From assembly GCA_001642005.1 (NCBI GenBank), contig LWCA01000052.1, positions 2,506 to 66,505 on the forward strand: DNA of 64,000 nucleotides, in the 5' to 3' direction. Made by a program: the position numbers and the translations under genes. This DNA is from Intoshia linei. Its lineage: Eukaryota; Animalia; Orthonectida. Positions 23,174 through 33,676 of the stretch are shown piece by piece; within the stretch, counting starts at the first letter, position 1, and every line of letters begins with the position of its first letter. The notes under the pieces are model-generated. The model was not told the DNA's origin and did no database searches. It worked only from the letters and a program-made list of their open reading frames with translations.

Positions 23174-26631
<3,458 letters not shown>

Positions 26632-28559
26632 TTATGTATTATTTATAATTTATAATTGATACTTTGTGAGACATTGAAATACAATTTAGTTTCATAGTAA
26701 TTTGGATTGTATGTTTCTACAACACATGTTATTTATTGATAAATTAGAAATTTAATTAATTTGATATAATACATAAATATATGTAGTATTTTAAAATGTA
26801 AATAAAATTGTATTCTTAATTATACAAAGTTGAAGAGTACGTCAAAATTATCTTTCATTAGCACCATTTATTTAATTTATATAGATTCTCATTAATTAGG
26901 TAAAAATGGAAATTTCACGGTTAAACAAGTAAATAAAATGAAATTATAAATAAAACATCGGTGTCTTTTATGTTTGAATTTGTATAGCTTATCCGTATCG
27001 TATTCCATTAAAATGTAATGCTCATTGAACATTGGTAAAATCAAACTGACTTGTTTTTTATGCAAAATAAAATCAATTTCCATATATAAAATCAATTTTA
27101 GACATGTTTCAAGTGATGAATTAAAATTTAATAGAAAGTTTTTAAATAATACATTTATTATTGTCATTTTAACATTTTCTTTTGAAAAGTTTTGTGAATA
27201 TTATGAACAATTTCCGTACAGTGTAATTTGAACTTTAAAATGAAAAGTTTAAAGTTTAAATGATACATGTATAATTCACTAATTGTTGATTATAATAAAT
27301 AAATAGTGCCATACCAAACTCTCATTAATTTGTTAAATTTTTGATGCATGAAAAAGATGATGCAAGTTACAATTAAGATTTAATCTGGTATCAAGTAGAC
27401 ATTGGAGTAATGAGTATTTAAATAGTTCACTAAATTAACTAAAATAACTCCACTTTACCCTTTTAACACTTTAAGACTCGAGAACTGCATATGCAGTTTG
27501 GAATGTGAACTTCAAATTTACTTAAACAAACTTTTTAAAAACATATCAATTTTCTTATACATTTTTTCAGGTGACTGTTGAAATTGTGGCATCATAAAAA
27601 ATAAATTTAAAACAAAAAATGTCTGACTACGAAAGTGTCAATACAGTAAATTGATAAAGTCGTTACTTTTTATCTATTTGTCAAACGTGACAAAAAGAGG
27701 CACCTGTAGGTTTTTATAAATTAGTGATATAAAGGAAAAGTTTATGAACTCAATATTGAGGAATAAATTATTGTTTATAAATCATAAATGCAATGACATG
27801 ACATTGCTCTTTAATTGTTTTTTATTGTATGCCATAAAATGTTAAATGAGTTTGTTTGCTTATTTGCATCTTTTGTTGTTTAGATTTGTTAATAGGTGTA
27901 GGACATTGACTTTTATTATCGGTTGGAATTTAATAAACTCATTAATTAACGTATTAATGATGCTAAAAAAGGAATACAAAGTGTAGTCCTATTTACATTA
28001 TAACTTATAATTTATAAGTTATACATTAAATACGACCGACTAAAATTAAATTACAACTAATTCTAACTAACCAACGCTAATTCATAGCACATCATCATAT
28101 AGTCTTATTTTTTACAGTGTATAATTACAAAAATTAAAAAGTGTATATGAAAATGCAGCGTAATAGACAAATGTGGTTATGAGCCGTAAATCTAACACAA
28201 CAACAACATTTAAGCTGAGATAGGAAATGAATCAAGTGTCTATAAATAAAAGAGTACCACCTCAAAACATATAAATAAGTTGCATTGTTTGAGTTATAAA
28301 TGTGACAATTGGATAGTCTACTATAAATAAACCGTCTGCAAAACCTGAGCTATGTGGTAATGTTATTTGTAACATTTAGCAATCGAGATCATAAAAATCG
28401 ACACAAAACTAAATTATGATGATTCGCAATGATCTTTCAGGTGTTAATTTAGGATATCCATATGCTCATCCAAAATTGACAATTACAAATATTTTGTGAT
28501 TACATCAAATTATTATACCTTGTTGACCAAAATATACCTTATAAAATATTTCCAATATA

Positions 28560-29534
28560 ATGTCAAAACTAACAAAGACTGATTCAAATTCTTCAACTGT
28601 ATCACTCCCCACATCTAAAAAATACATGGAAAAGGGAATTTTACCATTCAAACCTTTTATGGAAGAACTCGACAATATAAAGAGTATGGCTCAATCCATG
28701 AACCAAATTATTAACGAAGAAGATGTTATCGTTGATTCTCTTAAAAACAAACGAGTCGACTTTTGTAAGTGGAAATCACTTGATAATATCAGAGGTAACA
28801 CATTCAATAACGTATTCAACTACAAACATATTTTTGATTCATGTTGTGAAGAACAATCAGATGTGGAGCAAGATTTTTTCAATGTAAAAATTTACCAAAA
28901 AAGTTTTTTAAAAGAATTTGCTAGTCAGAATGATATTACTTTCTCTGGTTATGAAGCGGATTGTAATTCCAGTATTTCAGAATCAATAATAAATGATATT
29001 GGTGATTTTGTCGATATTGATGAAATTGATGGTACTGATGACACTGACGAGTTTGTGTCGGAATCAGATTCTGGGTCTAGTTCTTGTAATTCTGATTTAG
29101 AATTTCGAGAACTTGAATCAGAATATGAATATGATTATGATGAATTGGAAAGCATTTCTGACATTTTTCAAGAATGTGATAATGTGAATTTTACGAGTGA
29201 TGGAGGGAGTGAATGTTATAATAAATATTGCAATTTTTATCAATTTGATTCAGATGATGTGTTTCTTGAATCTATGGTACCTGGGAATTTTTTTGATATT
29301 GGATTAAGTATTAGTTCCGATTCAAATAAATTTAATCAATCTGTTGACCTTTTTACAAAACAACTCAAAAATTTTACATTTAAAAACGAAAAAAATAAAT
29401 CACATGACGTTTATCCAGTACAAACTAATCCACTTGATTTGTCCATTAAAAAGATTGAAAGAAAAAGTCACAATTCTAAAATTCAACATTGTTTGCTTCA
29501 AGAAATTTCAGGTTTGCATTTTAGTTTATATTAG
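28560..29534 (+). CDS. Acidic, Ser-rich orphan ORF (324 aa); probable exon 1 of a longer gene
   Basis: Long ATG ORF in AT-rich DNA. D/E/S-rich, with motifs KRVDF, PLDLS and several [FY]xx[LIV]. Candidate splice donor CAG|GTTTGC at 29511/29512. Confidence 0.75.
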   Translation: MSKLTKTDSNSSTVSLPTSKKYMEKGILPFKPFMEELDNIKSMAQSMNQIINEEDVIVDSLKNKRVDFCKWKSLDNIRGNTFNNVFNYKHIFDSCCEEQSDVEQDFFNVKIYQKSFLKEFASQNDITFSGYEADCNSSISESIINDIGDFVDIDEIDGTDDTDEFVSESDSGSSSCNSDLEFRELESEYEYDYDELESISDIFQECDNVNFTSDGGSECYNKYCNFYQFDSDDVFLESMVPGNFFDIGLSISSDSNKFNQSVDLFTKQLKNFTFKNEKNKSHDVYPVQTNPLDLSIKKIERKSHNSKIQHCLLQEISGLHFSLY

Positions 29535-30393
29535 GGGTCGAAATCTGTTCTGTGTGGTCGGGTGAGATTTGTTTGTAAAGTTATTTGCAAGTTTTAGAAA
29601 GTTACAATTTTAGGGGTAGTTGTAGTACGGTTACGAAATTTTCTGAAAATACTCAAAAATTAAAAAAATAAAACTTTTAGAATAATTTTTAAATTTTTAG
29701 GAAAAATTTCTACAAAAACATTAAAGCAAAAAAATCAATGAATTTTAACAAAAATTCGAAAAAATAAATATTTTATAGTAATTTTAGCACTGTGATGAAA
29801 TTTTCTTAAAAAAATAAGTTAAATTAATGAATATTCACTATAATTTCAATAAATTGAACTTTGAGGGTAATTTTTTGATTTTTACCACAATTTCTTAAAA
29901 AACAAAAGAATCAATGAATTTTAACAATAATTTTAAATGAAATGATGATGAAAGAGATAAAATTTTCTTAAATAAAAAGATAAATCAATGAATATTCACC
30001 AAAATTATAAAAAATAAAACTTTAAGAGTAATTTTTTATTTTTACCAAAATTTTTTTAAAAAAATGAAGAATTTTAACCAAAAGTCAAAAAATTAAATAT
30101 TTTATTGTAATTTGAGCACCGTCTGATATTTTCAAAAAAGTATTTATATATTCAAATTAATACAACCAAGAATGCAAAAAAATAAAAGCTTTGGGTAATT
30201 TTTAAATTTTTACGAAAATTTCTATAAAAAAATCAGTGAATTTTAACTAAAATTACAAAAAATTAAACTATTAAGGTAATTCCAACATTTTCATAAAAAT
30301 ATTAATTGTTTTTGAAAAAAATGTAAATATCTGACAACCGTCATGCATCAATTATTTACCCGGACATTAATGGAACAAGGTTGCCGACCTCTC
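29532..30393. mobile_element. hAT-like MITE with an internal tandem array
   Basis: Ends TAGGGGTCGAAATCT and AGGTTGCCGACCTCT are imperfect inverted repeats. Interior repeats aatcaatgaattttaac...aaactt..gagtaatttttt. Confidence 0.55.
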
Positions 30394-33048
30394 ATGTTAA
30401 AATTACATAATATATCAATATATCGTATACATAAGTAAATAAACACAATACATAAATAAAGTAAGGATTATTTAATTACATCAAAATACGGTAAAACCCT
30501 TGATAGCAAACATATATATTATCATTCGATTTTAACTAAAGAATCTGTCAGTATCACTATTCTATATACAATTAGCTAGTTCTGTAATTCATCAATCCTA
30601 TCGATTCATATGCGTTTTTTGTATAATTATATTTTTTAACGGGGTATGAAAACCAATCACCAAGACTTACCACACCGATGACTTACCAAAACCAGAAAAT
30701 AAACGTATTGCTTTAAAAAAAATTTGCAGATATATTATACATAATGTAGGTAATTATATTTAAAAACCCATAGCCACCTCTAAACAACTTTCATATCGGA
30801 TTGTTTGATTTATTAAAAAAATTGTTATAAGCATGTTAAATTCCGACAAACAAAAAATTTAGAAAAATATTTTCCAAGATATACCATTTTCTGACTGAAG
30901 TTTAACATGAGCTATTTAGTATAAACCGCCGTAATTTTATGGGCCAATGTATAATTAAAATTCTTGTAATGAAAAATCAATTTTAATGATTGGTTGTAAT
31001 TTAAATGCCTTTATTATATGTATTGTAATATTGTATTTATTGTCCAACCCGATACAGATTATTTGCAAGAAAAATTCAAATTTTCAAAAAAATAATTTGT
31101 AGTCATTATTATGTTAATTAAAAAAAATGGAGATGATGATAATTTTCATTTTTAAATGTCACTACCGATCTCGACCTAACCTAATTTATTGTTTTCTAAT
31201 AAATTTAATTCTTTACTACCTTCTAATAATTATGAAAATTGATAAAATTAAGATGAAAAGATGAAAGAGTATCTGAAAAAAAATCAATTTTAACATCTGC
31301 TAGTTTGTAATCTAATATATAGCGTTTCACAATATTACCATTAATAACATTACATATTTAAAATTTAGATTTCATTAGCGATCACGATATTTTAATTTTG
31401 ATTTAAAAAATGAAAAATATTTCTGAACCTTTTGTTAGTTTTAACATTTTTATTATAATATCTTGAGAGGAAGCTTAATATCCATGATACAGCCTGGGAA
31501 GCAAAATTAAGACAACTGGATTTATTTGTATTATTTTATGTTTATGTCGTGCTTACTGAGTAATAAAAGTAGTAGTATTTTATTGAAACGTATTTCCAAT
31601 TTTATTATAATAAAATCTTTCAGATAATAGGGCATATGTTGGGTTGTCAATCGTACTTTAATTTTATAATACTCCTTTATTCTGAAAACTATGGCTGATT
31701 TAATTATAAGTATAGTCAGTTTAGAAATTTTATTTAACAATTAATTAAGCATCATTTACAATGGGTATTTTAATAGGTAAACTATTAAATATGGTAATTT
31801 TCAAAACGCAATGGTATTTATGTCGACATTGTAAATTTTGCCACATTTATTTAATGTGTAAATTTCAAATCAAGATATACATTTAACAATTTGTAAAACT
31901 AATTTACATTGACGTTATTATAATACAAATCTATTCATGTCCAATGGACATTGTCCATTTATATTCCCAGATGGATTTTAACCGTAGGGTGCAGATAGCA
32001 TCAAAAGACATTTAAACATTAATAAATTGAGATACTTAATATGTATTTAATGTTTTAAAGCATTATTGACGGCGAAATTAGTTTTTATAAACAGTAAAAC
32101 CAGAATCATGCGTTGATTTGTTTTACAGTAAAATACATATATAATATACATTGCATGTTTTAGGATGAATGATTTTGCACCTGTTAAATGTGATTTCCTT
32201 TTTATAGAAAATATAGACCAGTATCTGGCACAGTGAATACACTTAAACAAAAAATTTTCATGAATGAATATATTTATATTTTGACGTTAATTTGTTAAAA
32301 TTACTACTAAAATTGAATCCAAAAATTATAAATCTAAATTTAATAATTGTATTTGATAGGCAGTGATATATTTAACCATTTAGTCAAATTTAAAATATGA
32401 ACATTAACATTGAAAACACAAAAATGATAGTTTATTGGGTGTAATCTAAACCAATTAAATGTGAATATACGTAAACTATACGCCTGGGGGTTTATACATA
32501 CAATTGTTATTGTCTAGATTTTATTTTAAATAAGAGTAATTTAGTTAAATGGTCACATCAAATTTAACACGTGCAAAACTATTCAAGCTTAAGCATTTAT
32601 CATTATATAACAACTCAATTGAAGGTTTATATACAAAATTTCACTTTCAAATTCAAGGCACAAAAATGTACTTTTTTTTATTATAAACGCGAATATTGTT
32701 TACAAAATAGTTATTGGACAAATTTTACAAGTTGGTTTATATTTTAGTCAGATTGATGATTAGTGAATATCGGAAATAACATTAACATTATTATTTCATT
32801 AGTTTTTTCAATTTCGGTACTTGTTTCAAGTCTTAATTTTTTAAAATGTGTATATTTTAATGTCAGTGGGTGAAGATAATTAGCGCTCATCTTCAATGAT
32901 TACAGTTCATCGACTCGATCGACATATTGATAAATGTTATAAATTGTACAAACATTTATAAATAAACATCAAATGATTATAGTATAGTTGTAATTTTATT
33001 TTACAACTTGTAGTGTTTTTTCAATGTTTTAATGAGTTTCAAATTTAG

Positions 33049-33431
33049 AACCAATAATACAGGATACATATGAAAGAAAATTGAAAAATATAATGCCATT
33101 ATCTGTAAGCTCACCGAATTTGCCCAATATATATTATACAAAAACCAAAAGATCAAAATCATGCCCTTCGAGATGTATTGAAGAATATGTAGGGTCTGAA
33201 TTGAGAAAGTATGGTGATACGTTTCATGAAGAAATACAAGTAGTTTTTATAAATATTTTTTTTCATGTTCAATTTTAGTCATACGAAAAGATTTCCAAAA
33301 TTCAATTATTTCTTGTCACGATTACTGTTGTGTGCATGAACTGTTTCAATGTTTCATTTCAAGTTATTCAATTAATATTTAAAAATGTTGTATTAATTAT
33401 TTTATTATTTTTAAATTATTTTGATTTTTAA
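33049..33431 (+). CDS. Candidate BH3-motif exons with a C-terminal hydrophobic tail (33049-33239 and 33279-33431)
   Basis: Reads ...LSVSSPNLP...KRSKSCPSR..EEYVGSELRKYGDTFHEEIQ, then a 39-nt GT-AG intron, then SYEKISKIQLFLVTITVVCMNCF...*. LRKYGDTF fits the BH3 LxxxGDxF consensus. Confidence 0.6.
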
Positions 33432-33676
33432 TAAATATTTTTATATACAAATTCTCATTCGATAATACCAAAAAAAAAAAATAATAGATTTAATTTCCTA
33501 AAATGATTTTAATTTTTGAATATTAAAACGAAGTCAATAGAATATTTTTTTATTTTAAAATCAAATACAAGTACTAAAATTTTTTAATGCTTTCTAAGTG
33601 GGTGTTTTAGACTTAAAAATGATGAAACACTTAATCGAAACGAATATACATGAAACATTTAATGTAATTTACAAAT

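Follow-up and report, generated by a model that had tools for sequence, protein, structure and literature searches.

An expressed gene that is apparently missing from the public annotation of the orthonectid Intoshia linei was found in a 64-kb window of its genome (64,000 nucleotides of contig LWCA01000052.1, positions 2,506 to 66,505), and its three-exon mRNA would encode a protein of 431 residues. Judged by its motifs, the C-terminal part of this predicted protein (the last 100 residues) resembles a mitochondrial BH3-only cell-death trigger. For the protein as a whole, we see about an even chance that it is a lineage-specific, tail-anchored protein of the BH3-only type, whose 14-3-3 site resembles that of BAD and whose major isoform carries a long acidic extension at the N-terminus. 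The BH3-only proteins form a functional class, the definition of which rests on a short motif and not on homology. The coding region extends from 28560 to 33431; coordinates are positions within the window, and all features lie on the plus strand unless otherwise stated. The window has a GC content of 27%, and the assembly comprises 41.6 Mb in 3520 contigs.

Gene structure and transcript isoforms

The search of public sequencing runs returned three runs of a single study (X1, X2 and X3), which were available as assembled contigs, not as reads, and for which strand information came from the GT..AG orientation only. Each run contained 23-31% of the sequence words of the stretch, approximately the exonic share. 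When the contigs were aligned to 28400-33600, a joint at 29509>33047 ('skips 3537, GT..AG (cut +2)'), equivalent to 29511>33049, was detected in 3/3 runs, as was a second joint at 33239>33279 ('skips 39, GT..AG'). A single 1661-nt contig of run X1 covered 28400-29509, 33047-33239 and 33279-33333 together with 303 nt upstream of 28400, and none of the contigs in the three runs led unspliced from intron 1 into exon 2. Because the contigs carry both joints, the two apparently orphan open reading frames (ORFs), one at 28560-29534 (324 residues) and a small one at 33081-33278, are exons of one mRNA. A preliminary description made from the sequence alone had predicted the donor, the acceptor and the short second intron and had named these two junctions as a check, and the contigs reproduced both junctions exactly.

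The transcribed 5' leader of the major isoform (28400-28559) contains an in-frame stop at 28542, so that the start codon must be the ATG at 28560. The coding part of exon 1 (28560-29511, 317 codons plus one base) ends at the donor GAAATTTCAG/GTTTGC (29511/29512), 7 codons before the ORF stop at 29534. Intron 1 (29512-33048, 3537 nt, GT..AG) is closed by the acceptor TTTAG/AACC at 33048/33049, and is followed by exon 2 (33049-33239, 191 nt), the GT..AG micro-intron 2 of 39 nt (CAA/GTAG...TTTTAG/TCA, 33240-33278) and the coding part of exon 3 (33279-33431, 50 codons plus stop). The three coding pieces of 952, 191 and 153 nt add up to a multiple of three and give 431 codons in frame, as expected from the joined protein of about 430 residues proposed earlier. 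The TAA stop at 33429-33431 overlaps an AATAAA poly(A) signal at 33430-33435. In the 5' leader, position 28493 is A in 3/3 runs and T in the assembly, reflecting either a strain difference or an assembly error.

A second 5' exon was also found. Runs X2 and X3 each contain a further contig, about 1033 nt long, whose end matches 33043-33078 and whose preceding sequence is unrelated, and the last 30 unrelated bases matched 26600-26629 of the plus strand exactly. The 3' end of this alternative exon (26600-26635) reads ...GCCATTTAT/GTATTA, with the donor GT at 26636 spliced to the AG at 33048, the acceptor shared with exon 2. The exon overlaps, in antisense orientation, a UDP-glucose 4-epimerase-like gene of the minus strand at its first coding exon (26497-26631). 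It may mark a second promoter of the BH3 gene, or it may belong to a natural antisense RNA of the epimerase gene. The stretch 26497-26636 is joined to 33049 over 6.4 kb; the start of the exon was not seen in the contigs. The alternative junction reads T/AA, a stop in the BH3 frame, and both remaining frames run into stops after a few codons, which means that this isoform cannot have an N-terminal extension. It could encode at most 99 residues (49 + 50) from the in-frame ATG at 33093-33095, a putative start that would give a BH3-plus-tail product only. The contig depths of the two upstream branches approximately sum to that of the downstream contig (40.5 + 17.9 versus 54, and 39.9 + 18.7 versus 64.9); as depth is unreliable when measured on contigs, nothing beyond the existence of the two isoforms was taken as shown.

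A rival explanation takes the transcripts to be real but not productively translated. As by-products, they would then stem from a long transcription unit, antisense or read-through, which crosses the epimerase gene and happens to use cryptic splice sites, and the non-coding 5' exon, antisense to the epimerase gene and sharing the acceptor, is in line with this explanation. The introns of 3.5 and 6.4 kb are far above the 39-42-nt micro-introns elsewhere in the genome, and the 5' leader would contain 12 upstream ATGs if it is colinear with the genome. In contrast, the 317-codon frame of exon 1, for which the chance of occurrence is P ~3e-11, joins in frame across two introns to 113 more open codons and a poly(A) signal, and the GC content of exons 1 and 2 is 29-30% when compared to 15-23% in the introns (exon 3, 20%). 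We regard a non-productive origin of the transcripts as highly improbable.

BH3 motif, 14-3-3-type site and hydrophobic tail

Exon 2 encodes 63 residues, in which two S-x-P motifs and the string RSKSCP (33150-33167) are followed by VGSELRKYGDTF (33189-33224), starting 7 residues after RSKSCP; the BH3 string and the two S-x-P motifs had been located in the same places in the preliminary description. The string VGSELRKYGDTF fits the full pattern of hydrophobic-x3-L-x2-hydrophobic-G-D-x-hydrophobic. With amino-acid frequencies taken from the long open frames of the window, this strict pattern has p = 1.1e-5 per position, corresponding to 0.0013 matches expected in exons 2-3, and the six-frame open segments of the window, 14,307 residues in all, contain a single match to it. 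Exon 2 also has its maximum of helical hydrophobic moment over the BH3 motif. When compared with residues 148-159 of human BIM (IAQELRRIGDEF) and residues 110-121 of BAD (YGRELRRMSDEF), as tabulated in PMC9171138, VGSELRKYGDTF was identical at 6/12 positions with each of the two, E-L-R and D-x-F being common to both. The upstream string RSKSCP has the form of a mode-1 14-3-3-type motif (RSxSxP), and the chance of a match to R[SFYW]x[ST]xP within 30 residues upstream of the BH3 is about 1e-3; it is known here as a motif, and its phosphorylation and 14-3-3 binding are putative.

A language-model comparison pointed to the same class of proteins. The neighbours of exon 2 in the ESM Atlas were one unnamed cluster, and then clusters of BMF, a BAK fragment, BMF/BIM, PXT1, BIM and BMF/PUMA, with scores of 0.76-0.84, and 8/10 of the best family matches shared a family or clan. 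As all of these scores are below 0.9, the matches serve as leads only.

The 50 residues encoded by exon 3 are hydrophobic from about residue 10 to residue 48 (approximately 33306-33422), with a 19-residue Kyte-Doolittle maximum of 2.29. Among 237 open-frame tails in the window, 3% are as hydrophobic as this one and 8% reach 2.0, which places the predicted C-terminal anchor of the preliminary description in the top 3% by hydropathy. Its status as a tail anchor is a prediction from hydropathy. Tail-anchoring of BH3-only proteins is itself treated as established in the part of PMC9171138 that cites Wilfling 2012.

The N-terminal region encoded by exon 1 is an orphan whose central part is acidic and rich in Ser. 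Residues 126-260 contain 27% Asp plus Glu, 17% Ser and 2% Lys plus Arg, confirming the acidic region noted earlier. AlphaFold2 run on exon 1 without an alignment gave a mean pLDDT of 33, a value that fits disorder and is uninformative alone. The sequence of exon 1 found no match among 5.8 billion clustered proteins, and its sole match in the ESM Atlas was adenovirus E1A at 0.78, a likeness put down to composition. In its basic end, the classical CtBP-binding motif PLDLS occurs at 29430-29444 (residues 291-295), which is probably a coincidence or likewise an effect of composition.

Homology searches were performed with exons 1, 2 and 3 one by one, a procedure that could miss a domain spanning an exon junction. 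The Pfam search of each exon returned sub-threshold noise only (Get5_bdg, E 0.06; DUF3975, 0.054; ACP_SdgA_C, 2.8), and neither PF00452 nor another Pfam family or other BH domain was matched in the three exons. The phmmer search with exon 2 against 1.84 billion representatives returned three long repeat proteins, the scores of which were sums of 2-8-bit stretches, and these were rejected as artefacts. Exon 2 had no match in the PDB sequences even at E up to 10, and in the genome of I. linei it found the locus itself only. The databases searched do include annotated I. linei proteins, such as NCBI "Bcl-2-related protein A1 [Intoshia linei]", which is 100% identical to a protein encoded on another contig. 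As these databases hold I. linei proteins and no self-match was obtained, the gene appears to be absent from public annotation, in agreement with the earlier expectation of an undescribed gene likely to be missed by homology search. Papers on Intoshia together with apoptosis did not mention a BH3-only protein, and no BH3-only protein has been reported from an orthonectid.

Candidate partners and comparison with known systems

The genome of I. linei contains two Bcl-2-fold loci that could provide binding partners. At the first, an open frame of 351 residues combines a CARD (E 1.7e-10) with a coiled coil and a Bcl-2 domain, and residues 198-339 of this frame align to residues 3-146 of the Bcl-2/Bcl-xL chimera chain 7yb7_A. 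No other protein with this combination of CARD, coiled coil and Bcl-2 domain was found in a word-index search. A micro-intron interrupts the second locus, which is most similar to Bcl-xL and a Bcl-2 protein of Schistosoma japonicum. The genome also gave matches to several caspase loci, to 14-3-3 on two contigs and to Atg8 on two contigs.

The CARD-Bcl-2 frame (L001:1459-2514, minus strand, contig C3300) corresponds to the NCBI protein 'Bcl-2-related protein A1 [Intoshia linei]' of 391 residues, and its gene has a 42-nt micro-intron after the GGW motif. The C-terminus of the NCBI model has no hydrophobic segment, and a straight read-on after 'STISNT' leads into a hydrophobic tail, which suggests a possible error at the 3' end of the public model. 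One further CARD locus and no more was found (L008:943-3903, minus strand, contig C2803), an ORF of 986 residues in which PDZ domains accompany an N-terminal CARD. Neither a caspase nor an Apaf-1-like gene was seen to carry a CARD, and NB-ARC gave a marginal 24.8-bit match only (contig C2038).

Co-folding of exon 2 with residues 195-339 of the CARD-Bcl-2 protein was carried out without alignments and with three controls. The interface score (ipSAE) was 0.53, 0.58 and 0.59 (median 0.58), compared with 0.00-0.02 in the controls (best 0.02), and the verdict of the tool was 'weak support', no interface being reported. The runs agreed in at least 60% of contacts, with a partner pLDDT of at least 49. 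In the calibration of the tool, its mark was reached by 51/78 solved complexes and 2/108 mismatched pairs; values of 0.60 or lower accounted for 5 of the 78 solved complexes and for all 4 passing mismatches, out of 180. Co-folding with the Bcl-2 proteins of the species had been suggested in advance as a check on the BH3 motif, and its outcome counts weakly in favour of it, beside the motif statistics and the BH3-only neighbours in the Atlas.

The alternative that has to be weighed most seriously is that the BH3-like and 14-3-3-like strings are coincidences in an AT-rich, fast-evolving genome, and that the gene encodes an orphan tail-anchored or hydrophobic-ended protein with a function unrelated to Bcl-2. 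Several points weigh in its favour and against a BH3-only protein. In a proteome of 3.5 million residues, about 40 strict BH3 matches are expected by chance, and the BH3 is a degenerate short linear motif of poor predictive value that gives many false positives (PMC9171138). No homologue was found that would allow a test of conservation. Exon 1 has no predicted fold, at the pLDDT of 33 given above, the co-fold was graded as weak support and the Atlas scores stayed below 0.9; moreover, many Bcl-2:BH3 complexes have been solved, so the co-fold pass may reflect likeness or memory, not binding. Tails rich in Ile, Leu and Phe arise easily at 27% GC, exon 3 having a GC content of only 20%, and the hydrophobic stretch of about 40 residues contains interruptions by Asn, Gln and Lys and has the acidic end ...NYFDF; in a classical mitochondrial tail anchor, the flank is basic. 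A rough post-hoc estimate for a BH3 with a hydrophobic tail behind it is about 0.3 chance cases in a proteome of 8,700 genes, and the scan behind the candidate extended over nearly all of the genome. The product is known at the transcript level, translation being predicted, and all three runs come from one study, with none on record as RNA.

What speaks against coincidence is the clustering of several independent features. A BH3 with both E-L-R and G-D-x-F, an RSxSxP motif, the amphipathicity peak and a hydrophobic end all fall within 113 residues, and far less than one such combination would be expected by chance in a proteome; when the 14-3-3 motif is added to the post-hoc estimate, it drops to the order of 1e-4 to 1e-3 chance cases, again as a rough figure. 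The Atlas neighbours are nearly all BH3-only families, and the co-fold controls remained at 0.00-0.02. Coincidence is a possible but less likely explanation, and the BH3-only reading is the one that we favour.

In its layout, the candidate is closer to tail-anchored BH3-only proteins of the BIM, BIK and HRK type, with a BAD-like 14-3-3 site, than to BNIP3/NIX. It shares with BIM, BIK and HRK the presence of one BH3, complete in its four hydrophobic positions and G-D, the absence of BH1, BH2 and BH4, a remainder that is predicted to be disordered, and a hydrophobic C-terminus, here on its own exon. Unlike them, it has no detectable homology outside the motif and adds an acidic N-terminal extension of 317 residues, and its tail is longer and interrupted, with an acidic end; binding and killing, which characterize those proteins, are putative here. 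The likeness to BAD lies in the RSxSxP 14-3-3-type site shortly before the BH3, at a distance of 14 to the BH3 leucine in the candidate. In human BAD, RSRSAP is located at Ser99, about 15 residues before the BH3 leucine. In contrast to BAD, however, the candidate exons did not match PF10514 (E up to 10), a Gly occupies the position of the phosphorylatable Ser within the BH3 of BAD, and BAD has no transmembrane tail.

The preliminary description had interpreted the protein as a mitophagy receptor similar to BNIP3/NIX or BCL2L13, in which LC3-interacting region (LIR) motifs of the acidic region would bind Atg8, and the BH3 and transmembrane segment would tie it to Bcl-2 proteins on mitochondria. 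The order of elements, a disordered N-terminus, a BH3-like motif and a C-terminal membrane segment, does resemble that of BNIP3/NIX; LIR-type cores such as GDFVDI and YDEL are present in exon 1, and the genome encodes Atg8. The cores occur, however, at the frequency of shuffled sequence: the numbers in exon 1 versus the shuffled means were 8 versus 6.5 for LIR-like cores (P 0.30), 1 versus 0.6 for xLIR (P 0.47) and 3 versus 1.7 for acid-flanked cores (P 0.24), with no enrichment in any class. The minor isoform lacks the whole LIR-bearing exon. Neither the exons nor, in a search without a positive control, the whole genome matched PF06553 (BNIP3/NIX). The BH3 of BNIP3 is atypical, whereas that of the candidate is canonical. 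The translation of exon 3 contains no Gly and no His, which means that the Ser-His/GxxxG dimerisation signature of BNIP3 is absent, and as the exons have no match to PF00452 (the Bcl-2 fold), the candidate is not BCL2L13-like. A mitophagy receptor is thus very unlikely, and from the proposed lineage-specific receptor joining autophagy and Bcl-2 signalling, the BH3-and-tail part is retained, based on the motifs, the Atlas and the weak co-fold, and the autophagy part is not.

The lineage-specific BH3-only proteins of other protostomes, namely those of schistosomes and EGL-1 of Caenorhabditis elegans, offer a further parallel, being likewise of a type that cannot be found by homology. The schistosome proteins were described by Lee et al. 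2011 (summarised in PMC8998228), and sequence cross-searches between the schistosome and nematode proteins fail, as do those against other protostome candidates (PMC8998228). Within Lophotrochozoa, BH3-only proteins are named there for schistosomes only (PMC8998228), and a BH3-only member of Drosophila was recognised only in 2023 (PMC10107002).

Surroundings of the gene and proposed mode of action

The stop of the exon 1 frame, shortly after the donor, had also been thought to coincide with the first bases of a miniature inverted-repeat transposable element. The DNA search of the genome found no second copy of the stretch 29505-30420, and no convincing terminal inverted repeats surround the array that it contains. 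This interpretation was not confirmed; what was found is a single-copy, internal and degenerate tandem array within intron 1 (about 29632-30298), which consists of 7 units of about 73 nt, spaced 74-169 nt and nested in units of 161-167 nt. Low-depth contigs of run X1 matched intron 1 exactly at 30308-30509 and 30641-30841, and one intron 1 contig carried a 16-nt deletion at 30664; these contigs could derive from pre-mRNA, DNA carry-over or an allele. The neighbouring genes, as judged from ORFs only, are G6PD with a large sortilin-like ORF nearby, an RCC1-like gene, an RTEL1/FANCJ-like helicase, a radial-spoke-head-like gene, the epimerase, TEAD, a sulfotransferase, transposase fragments, and a flightless-I-like gene with leucine-rich repeats plus gelsolin.

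On the favoured BH3-only reading, exon 1 would supply a long, probably disordered acidic N-terminal region, exon 2 the regulatory site and the BH3, and exon 3 the membrane anchor. The tail would be inserted post-translationally into the mitochondrial outer membrane or the endoplasmic reticulum membrane, and the amphipathic BH3 helix would bind the groove of one of the two Bcl-2-fold proteins of the species. Such binding could tip the cell toward caspase activation, as it does for BIM, BIK and HRK, and phosphorylation of the RSKSCP serine followed by 14-3-3 capture could keep the protein inactive, as for BAD. The minor transcript, without exon 1, would provide a BH3-plus-tail module of at most 99 residues. 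Each step that leads from the motif to the killing of cells, including binding in the groove, insertion into the membrane and control by 14-3-3, is inferred by analogy with these proteins.

A more specific version is that orthonectids evolved a BH3-only trigger with a long, acidic and regulated form and a minimal 99-residue form, produced by the use of alternative 5' exons, acting on the unusual CARD-carrying Bcl-2 protein. We consider this doubtful, as a speculative extension of the reading above; if it is true, a CARD platform would be under the direct control of BH3 binding, in a compact switch resembling EGL-1/CED-9/CED-4 in one of the smallest animal genomes.

BH3-only proteins are stress sensors of mitochondrial apoptosis and are almost invisible to homology search. 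The gene described here is a transcript-supported, unannotated candidate for this class from an extremely reduced spiralian parasite, and it indicates that public annotation of the 41.6-Mb genome overlooks genes whose introns are unusually long. As the genome keeps two Bcl-2-fold genes, caspases and 14-3-3, the candidate makes a three-part Bcl-2 system of orthonectids testable. The finding would become notable if binding is shown, especially with the CARD-bearing Bcl-2 partner.

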